A DNA stretch of 11,995 nucleotides from Selaginella moellendorffii (Eukaryota; Plantae; Lycopodiophyta), in NCBI RefSeq assembly GCF_000143415.4, contig NW_003314278.1:1-11995 (forward strand). Reading direction: 5' to 3'. The position numbers and the translations under genes were made by a program. Below, in pieces: positions 1 through 11,995 of the stretch (positions are counted from its first letter, which is position 1; each line of letters begins with the position of its first letter). The notes beneath the pieces are model-generated. The model did no database searches and was not told where the DNA came from. It worked only from the letters and a program-made list of their open reading frames with translations.

Positions 1-2
1 AT

Positions 3-164
3 GGCTTCATGTGTGAAGAGTTTGGTGTGGTAAGGTATGTTGTGGAGCAGCCAGAAGCCCAGGGTGAATATAAGTATGTGAGGCCTTGTGAGGTTTTACC
101 ACTGCCTGAGGACTCCTATGCATGGACCCTGGGCGAGAGTCATTTGCGAAAGTGTTCTGTGTGA
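3..164 (+). CDS. Possible 3' end of an unidentified coding region entering from the left window edge
   Basis: Open frame from the window edge, GFMCEEFGVVRYVVEQPEAQGEYKYVRPCEVLPLPEDSYAWTLGESHLRKCSV, ends at TGA 162-164 and is followed by AT-rich sequence. No family recognised. Confidence 0.25.
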   Translation, partial: GFMCEEFGVVRYVVEQPEAQGEYKYVRPCEVLPLPEDSYAWTLGESHLRKCSV

Positions 165-385
165 AACTGGTGCCCCAAGGCTTCTGGCCGAAGAGCATTT
201 TTTATTTAATTTGTGTAGAGTGTGGTTTATTTTTGCATATTGAGTGTATCGATATCTTTTAGTTAGCAGATTATATTGAAGAACTGAAAACTACCTACAG
301 TTAAGTGCATGCAGCAACAGATCATATAAAAAATGAATGCAGAGAATAACAAATCGGGATTTCTAGGAAGTTCATGCGTGTTGTT

Positions 386-412
386 AATAATAATAATAAT
401 AATAATAATAAT
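386..412 (+). repeat. (AAT)9 microsatellite
   Basis: Perfect AAT run. The paralogous site in copy B (1931-1945) has (AAT)5. Confidence 0.9.
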
Positions 413-705
413 CATAAAAACCTGATGTTCAGCCAGTTAGAAGATTGTCTGAAAATTATGCATGGATTGCTGCTGGCTCACTTTCTATATATATCAAAGA
501 GATTTTTTTTTTAACAATAAACATCTAAGCTGCTGCAGTTAAGCTGTGACATTGTAAAGTTTAAAAAGGAAAAGAATTAGAAAAAGAAAAAACAGAAAAC
601 ACGAGCTTTTTACTACTACAGTTAAGTAATAACAAATTGGGATTTCTAGGGTATGCGTGCGGCACTAGGGTTTGTGTGGTGTGTGTCTCATTTCTCAACA
701 ATCTC

Positions 706-749
706 ATGCAGTGGAAAACGTTTTTCAGGGATCCCACTTTCTGGTGGGA
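706..749 (+). pseudogene. Truncated 5' copy of the PDF-PPR gene (MQWKTFFRDPTFWW), broken inside the PDF motif
   Basis: Near-identical to 2256-2299. Similarity stops abruptly at 749. Confidence 0.8.
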
Positions 750-1618
750 GCTTCGATCAAAGACTTATTGGATCTACAAAGAGCTAGCAAGCCATCACTT
801 ACAGCAAAGTTCTTGTTGGGATCTTGTTTTTCTTCCTCAGCAGTGGACAAGGTATGATACAATGAAAAAGGTAAAGTCAGGTATTTGTTTAACGTCCGCT
901 TGGAGCAAACCTTGCTCATCGGATGGCCTCATGACAACCCATTACAACCCAGGATGAAAACTCCACATCAAAGCTTAAGGCAGCATCACTTGTGATCGCC
1001 TTCATCTTGCTTTACAAACTGAAGTTATCGAGGTTTGTGATTGGATAATGCTTGATGGTGCTGAGACTCAAATCATCTTTGTTATGGAAACAACCCCTAG
1101 TCTCTCCATGCAACACATAACAATCCATCACCTCAAGCTATTGTTTTTTATCCCTGTAACAGTGGTGCACTGTTTCCAGGTATAGCTCCCAAGGAGGTCC
1201 CAGTTCCCAGGATGGCCTTCGGTAAAAGGATCGGGACGATACATCAGAGAGGGAAATACACTGAACTGGATCCTAAGGTTCAACTGGGAGAATGCTCTGC
1301 AATACACTAGTTTGGGGAGTACCTATATCTGATCTTATATAGTTATCCTGGGAAGGTAATGAGTTCAGTGTGTCTTTTTTTATGTACAGGTCTAAGCATG
1401 GCAGAGAGCTTTTGATGGATAAAATTGACACCAAGCTTATGCGGAAGTTGAAGAATCGGAAGTACATTGTCAACATGTGGAAGACACTGGTGGAAGCTAA
1501 GGTAAGCTGGCTTCTTGTGCAGGACAGCATCCCTGTTGGTGATTGGCTCACAGTTCACAAAACTCTGTATTCTATGCAATGAAAACCCGTGGAGATGCTT
1601 GAACACCTCTTCACATGC
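750..1618 (+). mobile_element. Degenerate LINE (L1-like) ORF2 fragment: post-RT region and zf-RVT/CCHC zinc knuckle
   Basis: Across frameshifts, ~1470-1618 reads MWKTLVEAKVSWLLVQDSIPVGDWL..LCILCNE..VEMLEHLFTC, matching the zf-RVT pattern WK..PKV..WL....P....CxxC...E..HLF.C. The upstream part (SIKDLLDLQRA..AKFLL..QW) is compatible with the post-RT region but weaker. Confidence 0.6.
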
Positions 1619-1707
1619 AAGTCGCCACGAACAGATCTACCTGTTTCTTCTCCTTGCTCAGCATTGAATGGATCTCCATCCCGATGCGTAGAGCTCTCTC
1701 CCTCTTC
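1617..1707 (-). repeat. 91-bp inverted copy of an internal PPR repeat segment
   Basis: Reverse complement matches 2864-2954 with 1 mismatch, and also matches the +333 and +666 copies. Confidence 0.95.
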
Positions 1708-2299
1708 CTGGTGCCCTGAGGCTTCTGGCCGTGTCGCCCCATGAAGAGCATTTTTTATTTAATTTGTGTAGAGTGTGGTTTATTTTTGCATCGATATCTT
1801 TTAGTTAGCAGATTATATTGAAGAACTGAAGACTACCTACAGTTAAGTGCATGCAGCAACAGATCATATAAAAAATGAATGCAGAGAATAACAAATCGGG
1901 ATTTCTAGGAAGTTCGTGCGTGTTGTTAGTAATAATAATAATAATCACAAAAATCTGATGTTCAGCCAGTTAGAAGATTGTCTGAAAATTATGCATGTAC
2001 TGATTCTTCAGCTCTTGAGCAACTGATTGCTGCTGGCTCACTTTCTATATATATCAAAGAGATTTTTTTTTTAACAATAAACATCTAAGCTGCTGCAGTT
2101 AAGCTGTGACATTTTAAAGTTCAAACAGGAAAAGAATTAGAAAAAGAAAAAACAGAAAACACGAGCTTTTCAGTTAAGTAATAACAAATCGGGATTTCTA
2201 GGGTATGCGTGTGGCGCTAGGGTTTGTGTGGTGTGTGTCATTTCTCAACAATCTCATGGAGTGGAAAACGTTTTTCAGGGATCCCACTTTCTGGTGGGA
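1708..2299 (+). repeat. Copy B of the ~590-bp direct duplication (native upstream region and start of the PPR gene)
   Basis: Aligns to 167-749. Confidence 0.95.
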
Positions 2300-4940
2300 C
2301 AACAGGTTCAAGAAGAAAAACAAGTTCTTCTCAGAGTCCTACCCGGATTTCAAACATGTTTCTACCGGAGAGAGCCTGTGGATCGCCAACAGGAAAACAC
2401 CAACCTGGGTCTCTGCAAAACTCGAGTCGCTCGCTGACCCAGCTGTAGGTAAGGCCACCACGGCCCGCTACAAATCTCCACATACCCCGGTGAGTTTAGG
2501 GAGGCTGATACACCGCGTGAGAGACTCAGCTGAGAGCAGATCCCTTTCTTTGGGAAAACAAGCCCATGAAGCTGTGCTCAAGAGTGATGAGCACAAAAGC
2601 AACATCTACTTGTTGACGGGATTGCTCGATATGTACTGCAAGTGTGGCGAGCTTGAGGAGGCTCGCAAGATTTTCGACTCCATGGGAACCCGGAGTGTTG
2701 TGTCCTACAACGCGATCATCCAGGGCTGTGGCTCGAACGGGCAAGCTGAACTTGCTCTGGAGTACTACTCTGCCCTGAGAGCTTGTACCACCATTCAACC
2801 CAACGATCGGACACATGTCGCGGTGATCAGTGCCTGCTCCAGACTTGCTACCGAATCCAGCGAGAAGAGGGAGAGAGCTCTACGCATCGGGATGGAGATC
2901 CATTCAATGCTGTGCAAGGAGAAGAAACAGGTAGATCTGTTCGTGGCGACTTGCCTGGTAGACATGTACTGCAAGTGTGGCGAGCTTGAGGAGGCTCGCA
3001 AGATTTTCCACTCCATGGGAACCCGGAGTGTTGTGTCCTACAACGCGATCATCCAGGGCTGCGGCTCGAACGGGCAAGCTGAACTTGCTCTGGAGTACTA
3101 CTCTGCCCTGAGAGCTTGTACCACCATTCAACCCAACGATCGGACTCATGTCGCGGTGATCAGCGCCTGCTCCACACTTGCTACCGAATCTAGCGAGAAG
3201 AGGGAGAGAGCTCTACGCATCGGGATGGAGATCCATTCAATGCTGAGCAAGGAGAAGAAACAGCTAGATCTGTTCGTGGCGAATTGCCTGGTAGACATGT
3301 ACTGCAAGTGTGGCGAGCTTGAGGAGGCTCGCAAGATTTTCCACTCCATGGGAACTCGGAGTGTTGTGTCCTACACCGCGATCATCCAGGGCTGCAACAC
3401 GAACGGGCGAGCTGAACTTGCTCTGGAGTACTACTCTGCCCTGAGAGCTGATAACACCATTCAACCCGACGATCGGACTCATGTCGTGGCGATCAGCGCC
3501 TGCTCCACCCTTGCTACCGAATCCAGCGAGAAGAGGGAGAGAGCTCTACGCATCGGGATGGAGATCCATTCAATGCTGAGCAAGGAGAAGAAACAGCTAG
3601 ATCTGTTCATGGCGAATTGCCTGGTAGACATGTACTGCAAGTGTGGCGAGCTTGAGGAGGCTCGCAAGATTTTCCACTCCATGGGAACTCGGAGTGTTGT
3701 GTCCTACACCGCGATCATCCAGGGCTGCAACACGAACGGGCGAGCTGAACTTGCTCTGGAGTACTACTCTGCCCTGAGAGCTGATAACACCATTCAAGCT
3801 GATGCTTGCACCTACACCTGCGTCCTTGCTGCTTGCGGGAGTGTGATGGCGATCAAGCTCGGGAGGGAGATTCACCAGCTGGTGAAGCATAAAGGGCTGC
3901 TGAAAAACAATCCAGTTCTGGGCTCCAGCCTGGTGAGCTTCTACGGCAAATGCGGCGATGTTGATTCTGCTCAGGAAGCGTTTGACGAGTGCCGAGCTCG
4001 GGACAACACGGGTCTCTGGAACTCTCTCATACAGGCTTACACTCTCCAGGGCCGATCGATCGAGGCCTTGGAGCGTTTCTATTCCATGACTCAGGAGGAG
4101 GGCTGTAAAGCTGACGATGTGAGTTTTGTCTCGGTGTTGAACGCTTGCAGCCATGGTGGTCTGGTCGGGAAAGGAAGGCAGCTTCTGGATGAAATGCCCA
4201 AGCAGTATGGAGTCAAGCCACGTCTGGAGCATTATGTGTGCCTGATCGATATGCTCGGGCGAGCTAACCTCCTCGACGAAGCTGTGAGAGTTCTCAGAGC
4301 CATGCCTTTTGAACCGGACGCAGTGGTTTGGACGTCCCTGCTCGGAGCCTGCCGGAAGTGGAAGAATTACACGATCGGCAAACTCGCGTTTGAGCGTCTT
4401 GTGGAGATGGATCCCAAGAGCTGCACGCCCTACGCATTGATGGCCAATATATTTGGAAACCTGGGGATGCTCAGTGAAATGGCCGCTGTTGTGGAGAGAA
4501 TGAGAGGTGAAGGCAGCTTCAGGGAGCCCGGGAGAAGCTGGTGGACGGATGTTAGCTCAGGAAAAGTGCATTCTTTTTCTGTCGGGGATAGGAGTCACTC
4601 ACAGAGCGACGAGATTGCGGCCAAGCTCAAGCAATTGTTGCTGAGAATGAAAGAGGAGGGGTACGCGAGCGATGTGATCAACGTTCTAAAAGACATACCC
4701 GAGGAAGAGAAAGAGGATCACCTGTGCGGCCACAGTGAGAAGCTTGCGCTGGGGTGTGCTCTGGTGAACTCGCACCAGAAGGAGACCATCAGAATTGTGA
4801 AAAATCTCCGAGTTTGTGACGGTTGCCATGCGGCCACTGCTCTCATCTCTAAGCTGGAAAAAAGGCTAATCATCTGCAAAGATGCCAGTCGGGTTCATGT
4901 GTTCCAGGATGGCAGATGTTCCTGTGACAACTACTTTTAA
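2205..4940 (+). CDS. PLS-class PPR protein with E1/E2 and DYW (WW-type) cytidine-deaminase domain and an N-terminal OSB-type PDF motif; putative C-to-U editing factor. Start may be ATG 2256.
   Basis: 911-aa intronless ORF. S motifs (LVDMYCKCGELEEARKIF), P motifs (VVSYNAIIQG), L motifs, P2-L2-S2, E1 (AVVWTSLLGAC), PG box PGRSWWTD, HSEKLA, KNLRVCDGCH, HVFQDGRCSCDNYF. Confidence 0.95.
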   Translation: MRVALGFVWCVSFLNNLMEWKTFFRDPTFWWDNRFKKKNKFFSESYPDFKHVSTGESLWIANRKTPTWVSAKLESLADPAVGKATTARYKSPHTPVSLGRLIHRVRDSAESRSLSLGKQAHEAVLKSDEHKSNIYLLTGLLDMYCKCGELEEARKIFDSMGTRSVVSYNAIIQGCGSNGQAELALEYYSALRACTTIQPNDRTHVAVISACSRLATESSEKRERALRIGMEIHSMLCKEKKQVDLFVATCLVDMYCKCGELEEARKIFHSMGTRSVVSYNAIIQGCGSNGQAELALEYYSALRACTTIQPNDRTHVAVISACSTLATESSEKRERALRIGMEIHSMLSKEKKQLDLFVANCLVDMYCKCGELEEARKIFHSMGTRSVVSYTAIIQGCNTNGRAELALEYYSALRADNTIQPDDRTHVVAISACSTLATESSEKRERALRIGMEIHSMLSKEKKQLDLFMANCLVDMYCKCGELEEARKIFHSMGTRSVVSYTAIIQGCNTNGRAELALEYYSALRADNTIQADACTYTCVLAACGSVMAIKLGREIHQLVKHKGLLKNNPVLGSSLVSFYGKCGDVDSAQEAFDECRARDNTGLWNSLIQAYTLQGRSIEALERFYSMTQEEGCKADDVSFVSVLNACSHGGLVGKGRQLLDEMPKQYGVKPRLEHYVCLIDMLGRANLLDEAVRVLRAMPFEPDAVVWTSLLGACRKWKNYTIGKLAFERLVEMDPKSCTPYALMANIFGNLGMLSEMAAVVERMRGEGSFREPGRSWWTDVSSGKVHSFSVGDRSHSQSDEIAAKLKQLLLRMKEEGYASDVINVLKDIPEEEKEDHLCGHSEKLALGCALVNSHQKETIRIVKNLRVCDGCHAATALISKLEKRLIICKDASRVHVFQDGRCSCDNYF
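2218..2225 (+). promoter_or_regulatory. Telo-box-like motif (TAGGGTTT) upstream of the second ATG
   Basis: Reverse complement of the plant telo-box AAACCCTA, ending 30 bp before ATG 2256. Also present in copy A (666-673). Short motif, could be chance. Confidence 0.35.
2262..2423 (+). other. PDF motif (as in plant organellar ssDNA-binding OSB/PTAC9 proteins) within the PPR ORF
   Basis: WKTFFRDPTFWWDNRFKKKNKFFSESYPDFKHVSTGESLWIANRKTPTWVSAKL fits the pattern W..FF..P..WWDNR..K.N...PDFKH..TGE.LW.....P.WV...L recalled for OSB PDF motifs. Confidence 0.85.
2631..3797 (+). repeat. 3.5 x 333-bp intragenic tandem repeat (one S-P-L triplet, 111 aa, per unit)
   Basis: atgtactgcaagtgtggcgag recurs at 2631, 2964, 3297 and 3630. 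Units are nearly identical at DNA level. Confidence 0.97.
4527..4940 (+). other. DYW deaminase domain, WW variant
   Basis: PGRSWWTD (4527), HSE (4731), CDGC (4815), HxF..G.CSC, terminal NYF in place of DYW. Confidence 0.88.
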
Positions 4941-5224
4941 AACATGTCAGTGCTCTTTCTTGCAGTTATCCCTGGTTTTAAACCCTCCGTGAGTCGAGCA
5001 GAAACATGGGCCGCTGAGTGAGCATGCCTCGAAGTACCGCCGTCAACCTGCAATGATGCCAGTCGGGTTCATGTGTTCCAGGATGGCAAATGTTCCTGTG
5101 ACAACTACTTTTAAAACATGTCAGTGCTCTGTCTTGCAGTTATCCCTGGTTTTAAACCCTCCTTGAGTCGAGCAGAAACATGGGCCGCTGAGTGAGCATG
5201 CCTCGAAGTACCGCCGTCAACCTG
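4874..5224 (+). repeat. 2 x 174-bp tandem duplication of the last DYW codons, stop codon and 3' flank
   Basis: 4874-5047 vs 5048-5221, four substitutions by eye, ctg microhomology at the junction. Confidence 0.95.
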
Positions 5225-5662
5225 AACTTCAAGGAGAAAAAATTAACATTTAAAAGTTAAAACTATGCAAAAGGAGGATGACACCGGGAGCAAGGTGATG
5301 GCGGCTTGCGGCATGACCAACTTTGGGTTTGTGCTCCTAGAGCACGTTGAAGACGTGTGGAGGCTGGTGACGACGGCATTTGTTTCTTGCGACGTACTCA
5401 CCAGTTCCTCGGCGACGTCTTCCTTCCAGATTTTTTGAGCTTGTCGTGAGTGGTGACCTGCTTTCTCTCTCCTGTGACGACTTCTTCCAGCCTCTGGTGC
5501 CCAACCTCAAGGCTCTCTTGTGGATGGAGCTAGCCCTACACAGTGTGTGTGTGTGTATCAAACAGCAGATGCACAAATCGTTGAGAATTAGCAACAAGTG
5601 TGTATCATAGGCTTAGTACGTAGTGTACTAGTGTACATGTACATGTGTTTCAGCTAAATATA

Positions 5663-6409
5663 ATGGGCCAAATACACCGAAGAAGTGTGTATAAGAAGAG
5701 TAGAAACAAATTAAGAAATGTGGCCGGGGTTGGCCGCGGATCTCTGAATCTGGCCCCGGGAGGATTAGGCCATGGTTCTCGAGGAGGGGGTGCCCCGGGA
5801 GGAGGAGGCCATGGTTCTACTCTAGGAGGAGGAGGCCGTGGTTCTTCTCCGGGAGGATGAGGCCAGCATGTTCTCATGACGAAGACACAGCACTGGAATC
5901 TCATCTTCACCCTTTTGCTTTAGGGTGACATGCACATTGCGGATGACAAGAGCCCCGGTCTCCAAGTGCTGCCTGAGGAAGAAGACCGTGAACTTGAGGT
6001 TCGTTGGGCTGTGATTGGGAGGAGGTTTTGCATCGGCCTGTGGTGGGTCACCACCTGGAGTAAGTTTTCTTTGGAGTATTACGATGTGGGGAGGTGGAAG
6101 AGGAAACTTCAGATGGAGAAGAGGACCTTCTTCACCATTTGTGGGATGCTGGAGAGCGAGATCCAGAAGCAAGATACCGGTTGGAGGAGTGTGGTGCTGG
6201 TGGATGTTTGACTGGGGGTGACTTTGTACAAGCTTTTCAAGAACACAGATTACTTGGATCTGTCGGACAAGTTCGGCATCGGGGAGTCCACAGCTCATGA
6301 GATTGTCATGGACACTACTGTGGCAATTGTCAAGTGTCTCAGGTACAAGATTCATTTTCCTTCAACTGCCAAAGAGGTTCGAGCTGTTAGGGTGGGGTTC
6401 CATGCTCTA
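5663..6409 (+). pseudogene. PIF/Harbinger (HARBI1-like, DDE_Tnp_4) transposase 1, N-terminal part, with a Gly-rich leader
   Basis: ORFs 5645, 5930 and 6218 share one frame, broken by stops at 5858, 5921 and 6209. Reads WKRKLQMEKRTFFTICGML..V*LGVTLYKL....LSDKFGIGESTAHEIV...IHFP, the typical Harbinger N-terminal/HTH region. Confidence 0.85.
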
Positions 6410-6582
6410 CCCACCTGGAAATTTCTCCCCCCCCTCCAAAAAAACTCCCTTCCCCTTTTTTTTAATGGTTACTTGTAACCCTTTCTTTTTTATGCCATGT
6501 AGGGTTACACATCAGCATTCTTTTTCCCACATCATAAAGGATTAGGGCATTAATTTTGTTTGCCCTAAATTGAGCACATAGC

Positions 6583-6758
6583 ATGCCACAGCTTAGCAAT
6601 TCTTCCTTGGCAATCATTTCCCATGCTATAGAGATTGTGATGAGGTACTTAAATTTGGTAGAGTTGTTCTTCCTGGAGGAAAAGGACATGATTTTAGTTC
6701 CGGTTTCAAAAAAACTTTTATTTATTCGAATGGTGGAGAAAGTGATTGCTATAGTGCA
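6583..6758 (+). pseudogene. Probable N-terminus of Harbinger transposase 2, left of the inversion breakpoint
   Basis: ATG-led open frame runs up to the point where minus-strand transposase similarity ends. Assigned by position only. Confidence 0.35.
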
Positions 6759-6930
6759 TCTATCTGAAACACTACCTACTATCCTTGTTATTATGTCAAG
6801 GAATGAAGTCTTACTATCTACCACGACTTAAACTACCATCGAGTAGTACTTTTTTGCCCCAACATACCAATTTGTTGCATCCTCTGATCCTGGGAACTTG
6901 ATTGCAATGTGAGTGCAATCCATTGCACCA

Positions 6931-7053
6931 CAACAATTTGGGAATCCATGCAATCTCTGAAATCCAGCTATACTTCTTTCATTCCCTCCTCAACAATTTG
7001 GGAATCCATGCAATCTCTGAAATTCAGCTATAACTTCTTTCATTCCCTCCTCA
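6931..7053. repeat. 60/61-bp tandem duplication inside transposase 2
   Basis: caacaatttgggaatccatgcaatctctgaaat.cagctata.cttctttcattccctcct at 6931 and 6991. Confidence 0.95.
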
Positions 7054-7189
7054 TCCGGCCAATGAGTCATTATTCCTTCATGCTCAAGCAATGCATACCT
7101 GAAATGGCGTAGACAAGCTTGGGCAATGCATGAAAACACTCCAAATGCATCACTAATTGTCTACCACATATCTATAAGCTCCTGAGTTT

Positions 7190-7244
7190 GGACTTCCCGA
7201 GAGGTCACCCAGCCCAGTACTATTCTAACCCAAGGACACTTAAC
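7190..7244 (-). promoter_or_regulatory. 5S rRNA-derived Pol III internal promoter segment (A box, IE, C box) in the 3' LTR
   Basis: GTTAAGTGTCCTTGGGTTAGAATAGTACTGGGCTGGGTGACCTCTCGGGAAGTCC vs plant 5S GTTAAGCGTGCTTGGGCGAGAGTAGTACTAGGATGGGTGACCTCCTGGGAAGTCC (recalled consensus). Confidence 0.9.
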
Positions 7245-7501
7245 CCTAAGTATCCCAAGACCCTTAACCGATTGGAAAAAAGGGTGCACTCTTGTTCATA
7301 GGCCCTTTCCCTCTATATTTGAGCTGAGAGCCACAGCTCTCCCGAGAGTCCCGCTCTCTTGACACCCTACCCCTCGGGTCGAGCCCAGTGGGAGCAAACT
7401 GGACCAGCCAGATGTTAATCAACATGTGGTGTGATTCCCCTAGCCAACCAACAGAGTCGGACTTGAGACCTCTCTGATACCAAATGTAAGCTCTTGAGTT
7501 T

Positions 7502-7556
7502 GGACTTCCCGGGAGGTCACCCAGCCCAGTACTATTCTAACCCAAGGACACTTAAC
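7502..7556 (-). promoter_or_regulatory. 5S rRNA-derived Pol III internal promoter segment in the 5' LTR
   Basis: Same 5S-like segment: GTTAAGTGTCCTTGGGTTAGAATAGTACTGGGCTGGGTGACCTCCCGGGAAGTCC. Confidence 0.9.
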
Positions 7557-8005
7557 CCCAAATATCCCAAGACCCTTAACCGATTGGAAAAGGGGGTGCA
7601 CTCTTGTTCATAGGCCCTTTCCCTTCTATATTTGAACCCCATGGACTGTCTCTCGAGTTGTTCCCTTTGGTTGCTTACAATATCCCCGAATGCCAAACGT
7701 TTCAAAGCAATAGCTATTTACTTTGAAACAAGCAAGTGCCACCCTAGTATTTCTGCCAAACTTGGAGGAGGCCTCTTGACCAATTTTGGAACAAGCTCAT
7801 CACAAAGAAAAGTGAATGTAAATACCAAAACCTGAAAAACTTCTCTGAATTTTTATGGATCTATATGGAGAACCTCAAGCTCTGTTTGATACCACCAGTG
7901 TAAACTTCGTGGCTTGATGTAATACGCACTAATCGATAGCCCTAAGAGCTCCTTTTTCGTGATTACTCTTTCAACAAATGAAGATATAGCGGGACATGGC
8001 ATAGA

Positions 8006-8489
8006 AAGAGTTTAGAATTCTAGTGGTTTGAAGAAGGCTTGGATTGAGAAGAAGTGTTAATGTGGTCCAGTGTACCACATAGAGTTTGGGGACATTCCAC
8101 AGTATATAATTGCTAATGAAGGATATAACTATGCTTTACCAGTTTTGGTCCCATATCCAAATAAGTTTCATGGCAAAGAGCAATACAACTTCCTTCATTC
8201 TTCTACAAGGATTGTTGTTGAGTGATCTTTTGGAATTTTAAAGAGGCAATGGAAATTGCTAACTCAGAAAGGATTTAGAGGTCATCCAGTCATCCTTGCG
8301 AACAACATCATTGCTTGTTGCATGCTACATAACTTAATGATCACACAGAATGATAGGTTCATGGAAGATTTTGACCCCGACAAATTTAACCATGATGTAG
8401 GTTACCTTCCACAAAGGTCTCTTTGTTCAGCTAAAGATGGCATAGCATTGAGAGACACAGTGGAAAGGTTTATAGAGAGCTTAGAGTGA
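8006..8489 (+). pseudogene. PIF/Harbinger transposase 2, C-terminal part
   Basis: RV*NSSGL..IPQYIIANEGY...LVPY..EQYNFLHSSTRIVVE*SFGILKRQWKLL...IIACCMLHNLMI...GIALRDTV. Second catalytic D appears as N. Confidence 0.9.
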
Positions 8490-8807
8490 CAATACTATTG
8501 TACTTTATTTACTTAAGAGTGACAAAAACTAAACATTTTGGTGTTGATCCTCTTTTAAGATTTGTCGTGTTTCAGATCACTTGACACAAGGCAAGAAGTC
8601 CCTATTGAATCAGAAAGACAACGAAACTTGTTAAGCTCCGAGTTGTAGAGCATGACATAAGCCGATACCTTGTTGTTGACAATGGTGACCGCACAGCCCA
8701 CTGGTAGCTCTACAACATTGTTGCATATCTGCAAGCATCACAATTAGAAGGCCAGCTTTCGCAAGGAAACTCTTTCCACTCACAAGGAATGAGTGGCTTT
8801 CGACAAG

Positions 8808-9701
8808 TGACAGGTACATTTTCTTATGTTTTTTGGATTGTTATAAGTTTTGATGACCAATAGGAACCCGACTGCCTAATGTTGCTGGGGTGATCGACTA
8901 CTAGACTGGACGGCGAGAGCTACTACAACTGGAAGCAGCGGTACTCGGTCATCTTGCAAGGGGTTTGTGATGCCCAAAAGAGGTTCCTTAGTGTCTACGC
9001 TGGGTGGCCAGGTATGTTTCTTTGTGTGTTGTGGATGGTTCTAAAATGTTCTTTTTGCTTTCAGGACGTGTCCATGACATGAGGGTTTTTCGTAATTCAA
9101 GCCTCAGGAACAAGATTGTAGCAAGGGAGCTGCTGACATCACCCGCGGTGTTAGCATATGATGATAGGATCAAGCCATACCTAGTGGGGGACAAGGGTAC
9201 CAACTCCAGCAGCATCTGATGATTCCACACACAAGTAAGTCTTCTTCATTCTACTTTCTTTTGTTCACTTGCTGTGGTTGTTGCTCAGCTGTGAACCCGA
9301 CACCATCCAAGGCAGCTTTCAACCTTCATCACCACCTTGCTCGGATTGTTATTGAGCAAGCATTTGGACTTCTTAAAATGAAGTTCAGATGCTTGGATAA
9401 AAAACAAAGGATCCAGCCAAAGTACCTTCCCAACATCATCAAGAGTTGTTGCATCTTGCACAATTTCTTGATTGATGTTGGGGAGACTGATCTTTGGGTG
9501 GAGATCCATGCTTGGAGGAAAGAGGTGAAAAGGCTCAAGGACCAGGACCTCTTTGTTGATTATGGTGATCCCGAGCAAGCGGAAGGGGAGCCTCGCGAGG
9601 AGTTGCACAGTCCAGAGGGTGCGAAAGAGGCTAGAGAGAACCTCACGTTTTCCCTCTGTCTTTGCTTCGAAATTTGCCGGGATATAATTCTAAACATTTG
9701 A
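8808..9701 (+). pseudogene. PIF/Harbinger transposase 1, catalytic part, with three short introns (8814-8863, 9012-9064, 9235-9288)
   Basis: Spliced: TG/TRLPNVAGVID[deletion]..YYNWKQRYSVILQGVCDAQKRFLSVYAGWPG/RVHDMRVFRNSSL..YLVGDKG(frameshift)QLQQHLMIP..FNLHHHLARIVIEQAFGLLKMKFRCL..IIKSCCILHNFL. GT..AG introns of 50, 53 and 54 bp restore the frame. Confidence 0.92.
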
Positions 9702-9753
9702 ATTTGAAATTTGAATTAAGTGAATTTTAAGTGTTTGAACGCATTGTTTTTAA

Positions 9754-9925
9754 GTGCGAATCCGAGGGTGTTTTTCCACTTAAATCTAAGACATGTGCGA
9801 ATGCAAAAGTCCTTATAAGTTTACTTTGCAACACAATGTTTTTCAATGTGCGAACCCAACTTTCTTAATTTTTAAAGTGGGTCGCTTAAGTTTTTTTTCA
9901 CTAAATAAATGTGCGAGTTGGTCCT
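9754..9925 (+). repeat. Spaced GTGCGA(A/G) motifs; candidate subterminal repeats and right terminus of Harbinger element 1
   Basis: gtgcga at 9754, 9795, 9848 and 9911 in AT-rich DNA just downstream of the transposase, the last followed by gttggtcct. No matching left TIR seen in the window. Confidence 0.45.
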
Positions 9926-10134
9926 TTCTCAACATAAAAGATAATGTTTTGCCAAGCTTACCACAACCACTGGCAACCTTGATTGCCAATGATGTTGTCC
10001 TTGGTCTATAACCATACTTCTAGGGCCAAAGTTACACCACCAATGGCCCATAGCAAGCACAGCCATGGTGGCACAAGGTCTCAGCCATGGCTAGCACTAC
10101 CTTGGCTGGCCTTAGTCATGGGATAGCCATCTAC

Positions 10135-10525
10135 TAGAGGAGCTAGAGGAGAGCTGTTGTAGGAGGAGTGCTAGAGGAGTTGGAGGAGAGCTGTTGCAGG
10201 AGAAGTGCTGGAGGAGCTGGAGAGCTGCTATAGGAGGAGTGCTGGAGGAGCTGGAGGAGACTCAATGCACAAGGGGTTTTGGAGGAGCTAGAGGGTGAGA
10301 AAGAATGATTTGATGAAAAAGAAAAAAAACTGAAAAATCCAAGAGTAAGATTGGCAAAAGTACAATGTGGAAGAGAGTTGGTGCAAGAGGAGCACTAGAG
10401 GACATGGAGGAGAGTTGCTACAGGAAGAGTGTTGGAGGGAGGAGATATGTTGCATTGGGGGAAAGTAAGAGCCACTAGAGGAGTTGGGCACTAGAGGAAA
10501 ATAAGAGTTGCTAGGTGGAGAGTTG
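10135..10525. repeat. Degenerate purine-rich low-complexity repeat (ggaggagtgctggaggagctg-like)
   Basis: Many imperfect gaggagtgct/gaggagct/gagagttg units. Confidence 0.7.
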
Positions 10526-11134
10526 GGCATTATACACAACACCAGCTACACTCACTAACCCTAACCGAACTCAAATAGATATAATTTTCTGCATTGCACT
10601 ACGTTTGAATTTTTACATAAATAAAAATTTATATGATGTACTCATTTTAATACATTTTTTATTCATATGTACTTCTTGTTTATCTCTCAAAGAGTTCAAC
10701 TAATGTTTTTTTATCAATTTTATTCTTCCTGTAGCAAGCTTAAAGCAAATAGTGAAGAATATAAGGAAGAAGTCCTACACTCTTGCAATACTAAAATCTT
10801 GCAAACTTTCCTTTAAGAACATTATTACTAGTCAAAAAGTTCACTTTTTTTGAGTAGTCTGATGTGTTTGTCTTTATAGCATGTCCATAAACAGAAAACA
10901 AGGAACTTTTTACTTGCTCCTCATAGTAGAGTATCACAGTGATAGAAGAAGTTTGAGCTTCTTCTCCATGCAATGGGCAACAATATAATCAAGTGGCTGT
11001 AGTGATTGATACAAAAGTTCTCCTGGATCTTGCTTGTTAGGCTGGCATGGCTAAGACACTGATAAAGGTAAGTTCTGCAAAGATTTAATAAGGTTTTGCT
11101 GGATTGTCCTTACTGGGCTTACAGTTTGATCATG

Positions 11135-11308
11135 GGTGATCAGGAGCTCACAGTTTTGCACAAGATTTGATCAAACATGTTTCTTGCTTGAGGTAGGATC
11201 CTTGATCTGCCATGGGTGGTGATCAGGAGCTCACAGTTTTGCACAAGATTTGATCAAACATGTTTCTTGCTTGAGCTAGGATCCTTGATCTGCCATGGGT
11301 GGTGATCA
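11135..11308. repeat. 2 x 83-bp tandem duplication
   Basis: ggtgatca starts at 11135, 11218 and 11301. One substitution between units (gaggtagg vs gagctagg). Confidence 0.95.
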
Positions 11309-11995
11309 ATGCATTCACAAAAGGTGCCGGAATGAAATCCAACAGCTTAAGCACTTTCAAAAGACACCCATTCTAGGCATTTGCAGTGATCATTGCATTC
11401 CAAGAGACCAAGGTCCTCTTGCTCAAAACTTCCTGCTATGCTCATGATCACATTTCCAAGATTGAGCTCCATGTTTCGAGAATTCTTCTGTGAATCGTCA
11501 CTTCTTTCTCATACTGCACAGGTCACAAATCACCCAAGAAATCACCTCATGGAGGCTGCAACACTCAATAGTTCTAGGACTGGCAGACAAGCCCTGTCCC
11601 ATGGACAGCCACTGCTCCTTACGTGGGAATGTGCACATTACAGAGGTTCGTTTCTGTTTTCCAGTCTGTCTTTTAACTCCTCAAATGTCTTGATCATTAT
11701 GAAGAAGGGAACCCATTGAGAAAATACAGTGTTGGGCAGACTGTTCGAGCTAAAATCCTTTCAAAACGTAAAACCAGCAGAAAGCACAGAAATGCTGCCA
11801 CTTTGGATTTATCTCTACGTCCATCTGAGCTTGCAGGTCTGTATGGCCTTTGAATTAGCTTACTTATCATGACTTGCAGGAAACGATGCTGCATGTTCAG
11901 TGATTACTTTCGAGACCGTAACCATTGAACAGTCGGTTATCAGATATGTTCAAGAAGTAAAGGACAACTGGGCATGGCTAGTCCTCTCACCCCAT

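Follow-up and report, generated by a model that had tools for sequence, protein, structure and literature searches.

The 11,995-nucleotide (nt) stretch of Selaginella moellendorffii DNA analysed here (contig NW_003314278.1, positions 1 to 11,995; hereafter the window, to which all coordinates refer unless another locus is named) encodes a pentatricopeptide repeat (PPR) protein in which a PDF domain of the type found in OSB proteins precedes a PLS repeat array and a DYW deaminase domain. PDF-capped PLS-DYW proteins are a real, old and apparently undescribed variant of the PLS-DYW editors. Their sequences were already present in public gene models, and the copy in the window belongs to an unstable subfamily.

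A PDF Domain Joined in Frame to a PPR-DYW Protein

The window contains a single long open reading frame (ORF) on the forward strand (2205-4940), with 911 codons and no internal stop. This bears out the in-frame join of a PDF motif to a PPR-DYW protein that had been proposed from the letters of the window (hereafter the original prediction). A Pfam scan of the ORF identified PPR_2 (E 1e-63), the E and E+ motifs, and DYW_deaminase (E 3e-30). There was no Pfam match within the first 95 residues, and no single-stranded DNA-binding (SSB)/OB-fold domain was matched anywhere in the ORF.

The PDF domain occupies residues 19-74 (2259-2426), practically as predicted (residues 20-73). Scored against a profile of 37 motifs from non-PPR proteins, these residues reached 65.3 bits, while the best of 2000 shuffles reached 14.8, which rules out a chance match. 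The proteins behind the profile were first retrieved by searching with the window motif itself; SSB+PDF proteins and a named OSB3 are among them. Residues 18-76 match 463 cluster representatives at E <= 0.001, SSB+PDF proteins among them, one a named Chenopodium OSB3. The motif of about 50 residues (W..FF..P..WWDNR..K..PDFK.K....LW...P.WV) is present with all six of its invariant columns, and is 40-57% identical to the aligned PDF segments of OSB proteins. An AlphaFold model of the motif (mean pLDDT 81) shows a helix, two short strands and a helix; in a fold search it matched an SSB-family Atlas model at TM 0.83 and Atlas models of PPR and DYW clusters at TM 0.74-0.81. Judged by profile score and predicted fold, residues 19-74 are a true OSB-type PDF domain, here with a 4-residue insertion (FFSE). 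The PDF motif has no Pfam family, and no solved structure for it was found by sequence or by fold; the fusion has therefore gone unannotated.

The spacer that follows (residues 75-95, 2427-2489) is only about 21 residues long, not the 40 or so of the original prediction, and a degenerate L motif begins at residue 96. In most other copies of the gene the spacer has 7 extra residues. It occupies the position of the first P motif of moss relatives, of which it is probably a remnant. The PLS array (2490-4319, up to residue 705), delimited from Pfam matches and the translation, consists of 17 motifs, four L-S-P triplets, then L-S and P2-L2-S2. It is continued by E1 and E2 motifs (4320-4517; Pfam and alignment), giving the P2-L2-S2-E1-E2 ending of editing factors, and by the DYW domain from residue 772 (4518-4940). 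An assembly chimera, or a false joining of separate genes, was considered and rejected, because an independent assembly of 2011 shows the same join in eight copies, and it is seen again in three RNA-like runs and one DNA-like run.

The Deaminase Domain

The DYW domain matches the synthetic PPR-DYW protein 9KFX (E 6e-39) and OTP86 (7O4E, E 2e-29). Its PG box, PGRSWWTD, has a WWTD ending that presumably recalls the DYW:WW subgroup. HSE is found at residue 843 (4731) and CDGC at residue 871 (CDGCH, 4815). In an alignment with 9KFX, OTP86 and DYW1 the HSE, CxxCH and H...CSC ligands are kept, and the ligands of the second zinc (Zn2) align with those of solved DYW domains, in which the zinc ligand positions have been defined (PMC7611903). 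The DYW domain with intact HSE/CxxC of the original prediction thus stands as far as all zinc ligands are concerned, but the protein ends in DNYF and not in DYW. Membership of the U-to-C subgroup DYW:KP, which is defined by an HAE active site and a changed PG box and C-terminal triplet (PMC9478123), is ruled out by HSE and the PG box.

Transcription and the Start of the Protein

Contigs from three RNA-like runs span 2231-2657, 2231-2660 and 2185-2660 without a splice joint, running from the PDF domain into the repeats. We presume these runs to be RNA-like from the absence of cover before about 2185-2231; run X17, by contrast, extends over the entire stretch. All three contigs contain a 21-nt insertion in the spacer. 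Because this insertion is missing in the window, the contigs derive from another allele or a sister copy; none of the three runs showed the window's own allele. The check for transcripts across the PDF/PPR join was therefore positive for 2231-2660, unspliced, in a sister copy. Removal of the PDF domain by splicing was rejected, as no joint was seen between 2231 and 2660 in these contigs.

The predicted start, ATG 2205, is in frame in the window, but the start of the protein is uncertain. Comparison of the copies makes ATG 2256 (reading MEW), which they share, the likelier start, and the protein would then have 894 instead of 911 residues. ATG 2205 loses the frame in the X6 transcript contig through a 2-nt insertion at 2230; several genomic copies likewise have it out of frame, the optional 17-codon leader (2205-2255) being frameshifted there. 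An in-frame TAG at 2199-2201 means that at most 17 residues precede MEW in the window, and the transcript contigs yield no longer leader. A rare upstream exon spliced at AG 2200-2201 may exist.

The transcript contigs of runs X1 and X2 carry a different 5' sequence, which ends in an AT run and is joined at 2231 (up to about 1.5 kb of it in X1). Read by hand, this sequence has a TAG in frame, followed by an ATG that lies nine codons ahead of MEW. It was absent from every locus fetched, and the candidates for its origin are another paralog, read-through and an assembly join.

RefSeq models P0001 and P0011, which treat the repeats as an intron, were set aside as probable artefacts, the genomic frames being open through the repeats. 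The RNA-like contigs also map to the repeat unit and connect one unit with the next; a minor spliced form lacking the repeats may exist. In RefSeq XP_024536012.1 and XP_024521142.1 an intron is placed over the greater part of the repeat array despite an open genomic frame. Such gene models are probably annotation artefacts that understate the length of the protein.

Distribution and Age of the Fusion

When PDF, PPR and DYW were searched for in one protein, as the original prediction had suggested, a Sphagnum cluster was positive, and PDF-PPR proteins were found in Adiantum. A metagenome scan yielded two complete PDF-PLS-E-DYW ORFs, L071 (975 aa) and L072 (788 aa), the first of which falls into one 90% cluster with Sphagnum magellanicum KAH9533372.1. 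Both have Arg/Ser-rich leaders, DYW ends, and a PDF domain directly against the first P motif. Like the window protein, the Sphagnum KAH9533372.1 cluster, Adiantum KAI5061374.1 and Selaginella XP_024517303.1 have the PDF domain before the first PPR motif, unannotated in each case. The Sphagnum cluster also shares the E-DYW part, but the moss versions differ in having leaders and a complete first P motif. KAI5061374.1 has two PDFs ahead of its PPR repeats and no enzyme domain, and a transcript contig (P0027, run SRR4210093) encodes three PDFs followed by a long PLS array. XP_024517303.1 represents a second, distant Selaginella family (PDF-PLS without DYW), whose PDF is the sister of the window PDF at 96 SH-aLRT, in a tree of 55 columns that is compatible with one or several fusion events. 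At locus L004:6001-6250 the PDF of this protein is split over two frames, as a short intron within the motif would explain. Taken together, these sequences indicate that the fusion is old and spread across seedless plants.

The search with the ORF itself returned no database proteins closer than PPR models of S. moellendorffii. Searches for long PDF proteins with a word index had low sensitivity or drifted to ordinary PPR proteins. An occurrence in prokaryotic genomes was dismissed, the one example being a lone 536-nt contig and a likely contaminant. Marine contigs (L073, L080, L087, L124 and related ones) that appear to be green-algal encode an SSB-like domain plus a PDF, which bears on the origin of OSB proteins.

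The window protein shares with PLS-DYW editors (PpPPR56/65, OTP86, 9KFX) the P-L-S triplets, P2-L2-S2, E1, E2, the PG box, HxE/CxxC and the second zinc site. It differs from them in its N-terminal PDF, the lack of an evident transit peptide, 44-residue L motifs, an array of near-identical 111-residue units, a PG box ending in WWTD and the C-terminus DNYF. With the OSB proteins (AtOSB1-4; OSB2 is PTAC9) it has in common one PDF of the same predicted fold. OSB proteins, however, consist of a transit peptide, an OB-fold-like domain and C-terminal PDFs (PMC13393729), whereas the PDF here is N-terminal; by its domain content the window protein borrows an OSB part and is not an OSB. PPR-RRM/MORF fusions (PMC13386178) and PPR-SMR proteins are similar in that a PPR array is combined with an accessory domain of nucleic-acid or cofactor type.

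The literature searched, which missed most subscription papers, contained no description of a PDF-PPR-DYW fusion, in agreement with the original prediction, whose author knew of no functional account. A 2026 survey of editing-factor fusions in 364 species mentions neither 'PDF motif' nor 'OSB' (PMC13386178). A 2026 survey of OSB proteins was restricted to those that have both domains and makes no mention of PPR (PMC13393729), and a 2014 review lists canonical OSB as not detected in S. moellendorffii (PMC4166229).

PDF-Like Modules in Phages

The Atlas fold search also matched the PDF model to tailed-phage proteins (TM 0.62-0.66) and to a phage Rad52/Rad22 cluster (TM 0.52). A scan of viral sequences gave 55 loci. 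Among the 53 examined, 39, in about eight sequence groups, are ERF-like proteins that anneal single-stranded DNA (ssDNA), and one is a Rad52/Rad22 protein. In both types the PDF core (WDNR..K.NPKAPDFK) sits after the annealing domain, which is the ERF domain in the ERF-like proteins. Most of the phage motifs are cysteine-flanked half motifs (23-32 bits); near-full motifs, scoring 40-54 bits against the plant profile, occur in a few uncharacterised phage proteins. Unlike the window protein, the phage proteins that share the PDF core have no PPR repeats. Examples of the module are found at L018:2452-3177, L021:2419-3189, L023:2278-3282 and L008:2731-3180, within loci L008-L062. The OSB literature examined does not mention them, and PDF has been described as confined to green plants (PMC4166229), with which these look-alikes appear to conflict. 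Their context supports a role of the PDF module related to ssDNA.

Gene Copies and the Repeat Array

The gene region aligns at about 88-99% identity with loci of assembly GCA_000143415.2. In four of the copies the reading frame is open all the way from PDF to DYW, a length of 2.4-3.8 kb. Among the eight copies pN/pS is 0.32 in the PDF domain (with few differences), 0.42 in the tail repeats and 0.53 in the DYW domain.

Residues 143-533 are made up of three and a half near-identical 111-residue units, encoded by a minisatellite (2631-3800) of three full 333-nt units and a partial fourth, 93-97% alike. The number of unit starts ranges from 2 to 9 among the eight copies (e.g. L001, L002, L005-L007), and the closest locus, L006, has three as against four in the window. 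PPR motifs read bases by a code of their fifth and last residues (PMC12733224). In the window units these pairs are N/N, N/N, T/D and T/D in the P motifs, and T/S, T/S, N/S and N/S in the S motifs. The reading of pairs with Ser as last residue is general background outside that publication. The predicted target of the window array is nAYnAYnCGnCGnAU, followed by a C about six bases on.

Common amino-acid variants among 31 distinct units lie at 4 of the 6 code positions and at 16 of the 105 others (Fisher p 0.009, which is indicative only, the units being related and not independent). In these units pN/pS is 2.3 at code and 0.80 at non-code positions. The variants at code positions mostly swap one standard code residue for another, and the P-motif pairs N/N, N/D, T/N and T/D are all present among the units. 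By the code, each copy would read a different sequence. This reassortment of code residues within a 333-nt minisatellite is TALE- or PRDM9-like.

Possible Functions of the PDF Cap

The reading that we favour, with about even confidence, is that the protein edits RNA from C to U as an editing factor of the plant-organelle type, and that its cap is an accessory that binds single strands independently of sequence. The PLS array would read its target one base per repeat and the DYW domain would deaminate the C just downstream of the site read by the array. The PDF domain, presumably borrowed long ago from OSB proteins, would cap the N-terminal end of the array, facing the 5' side of the target, and would grip single-stranded nucleic acid without sequence preference. 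It could then keep the enzyme on the ssDNA of nucleoids, close to nascent transcripts, or hold the upstream RNA open. In favour of this reading are the complete PLS-E1-E2-DYW part with its zinc ligands, the profile and fold matches of the PDF, the other PDF-PPR and PDF-PLS-E-DYW proteins, the pN/pS values below 1 in the PDF, tail repeats and DYW domain, and the swaps between standard residues at code positions. For AtOSB1, and only for it, the PDF has been shown to suffice for binding of ssDNA (PMC6963530), and OSB proteins favour ssDNA over dsDNA or RNA (PMC4166229). Of the roles offered in the original prediction, additional non-specific affinity or tethering to the nucleoid would fit the evidence best, and deamination of ssDNA has no direct support.

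Several observations weigh against an RNA editor aided by its cap. The preference of the OSB PDF is for DNA over RNA (PMC4166229), and editors do not need a PDF, because 117 other PPR proteins, about 20 of them from Selaginella and many from seed plants, have gene models without one (a control, not a survey). From their sequences, no transit peptide is evident in the window protein or its subfamily, and the leader, on inspection of its composition, lacks richness in Arg and Ser (one of each). The PDF is intact in four of the eight copies and frameshifted or partly deleted in the other four, two of which still have an open long PPR-DYW frame; the window PDF has a branch length of 0.63 in the 55-column tree, against 0.08 for its sister. 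Finally, deaminase activity is plausible but not assured, because the terminal Trp, reported to be essential in DYW1 and PpPPR65 (PMC7611903), is replaced by Phe (D-N-Y-F) in the copies with an intact end.

Many of these observations could also be explained if the PDF, functional in ancestral organelle-targeted PDF-PPR genes, were vestigial in this young, amplifying birth-and-death cluster, where the transit peptide has been lost, sequences drift and unequal crossing-over alters the array without selection. The PDF lesions, the missing leader and the Trp-to-Phe end fit such decay, as do the frameshifts, inversions and truncated duplicates among copies 88-99% alike, the pN/pS of 0.80 at non-code positions, the rearranged region upstream of the window copy and the failure to see its allele in the three runs. 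Decay accounts less well for four full frames kept open, for transcription of sister copies seen in the RNA-like contigs, for pN/pS below 1 in the PDF, tail and DYW, and for the enrichment of variants at code positions; we regard it as doubtful, though the strongest of the alternatives. It is quite unlikely, in our view, that the PDF is a targeting or protein-docking element (an import signal, or a means of oligomerisation or nucleoid recruitment) instead of a nucleic-acid grip. It lies at the extreme N-terminus here, in XP_024517303.1 and in the Adiantum model, and in its AlphaFold model a short helix and a run of basic residues come first; however, the latter two gene models may miss a first exon, the moss relatives carry a separate leader ahead of the PDF, and the conserved aromatic and basic residues suit nucleic-acid binding.

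An ssDNA-binding cap, no transit peptide and TALE-like turnover of the array would also suit a sequence-guided ssDNA cytidine deaminase, or an extra-organellar editor, in which reshuffling of the array would keep pace with shifting targets, mobile elements for example. Designer P-type PPR arrays use the same code to bind ssDNA (PMC12733224). The bacterial DYW-like SsdA is reported to deaminate ssDNA (PMC12494967, PMC12628173), and moss PPR-DYW editors are reported to act on nuclear transcripts in human cells (PMC9508816). Yet the literature search gave no plant PPR-DYW protein that deaminates DNA, in relatives built on the same plan the leaders are organelle-like and the DYW ends ordinary, the PDF is lost in many copies, and no target is known, so we give this explanation little credence. 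Just as improbable is a naturally reprogrammable deaminase family acting on ssDNA or on targets outside organelles, in which a DYW domain would be combined with an array that reshuffles its code residues between copies in TALE-like fashion and with an ssDNA-binding domain related to phage modules.

The unannotated cap adds a part to the usual scheme of PLS-DYW editors, which comprises transit peptide, repeats and deaminase. On moss and lycophyte editors, and on fern PPR proteins, it is a possible way to gain affinity or to reach nucleoids in lineages that are not known to have MORF cofactors. The PDF cap could also serve as a useful part for synthetic editors.

Other Features of the Window

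The region upstream of the gene (1-1707) is rearranged in a manner that looks like template switching. It holds a shortened second copy of the sequence upstream of the gene, together with the first 44 nt of PDF coding (190-749, forward strand); a second PDF gene at 637-957 was rejected, only this 44-nt truncated duplicate being present. A 94-nt fragment of a PPR repeat unit lies inverted at the rearrangement junction (1614-1707, reverse strand). Between the two, an inverted piece (744-1620) matches L001:4180-5042. At the other end of the gene, a 174-nt tandem duplication (4874-5221, forward strand) includes the last codons and 3' flank and was not seen in other copies. Opposed pairs of gene copies occur at L002:2213-12148 (head-to-head, with a 158-nt inversion in the tail of the second copy) and at L007:8001-15526 (tail-to-tail).

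Further along the window, transposase fragments of the DDE_Tnp_4 (PIF/Harbinger-like) type are present at 5930-6478 and 9219-9701 (HTH_Tnp_4 E 9e-4, DDE_Tnp_4 E 8e-12). Other local repeats are a 138-nt pair (7175-7624), a purine-skewed tract (10111-10442) and an 83-nt tandem pair (11135-11300).

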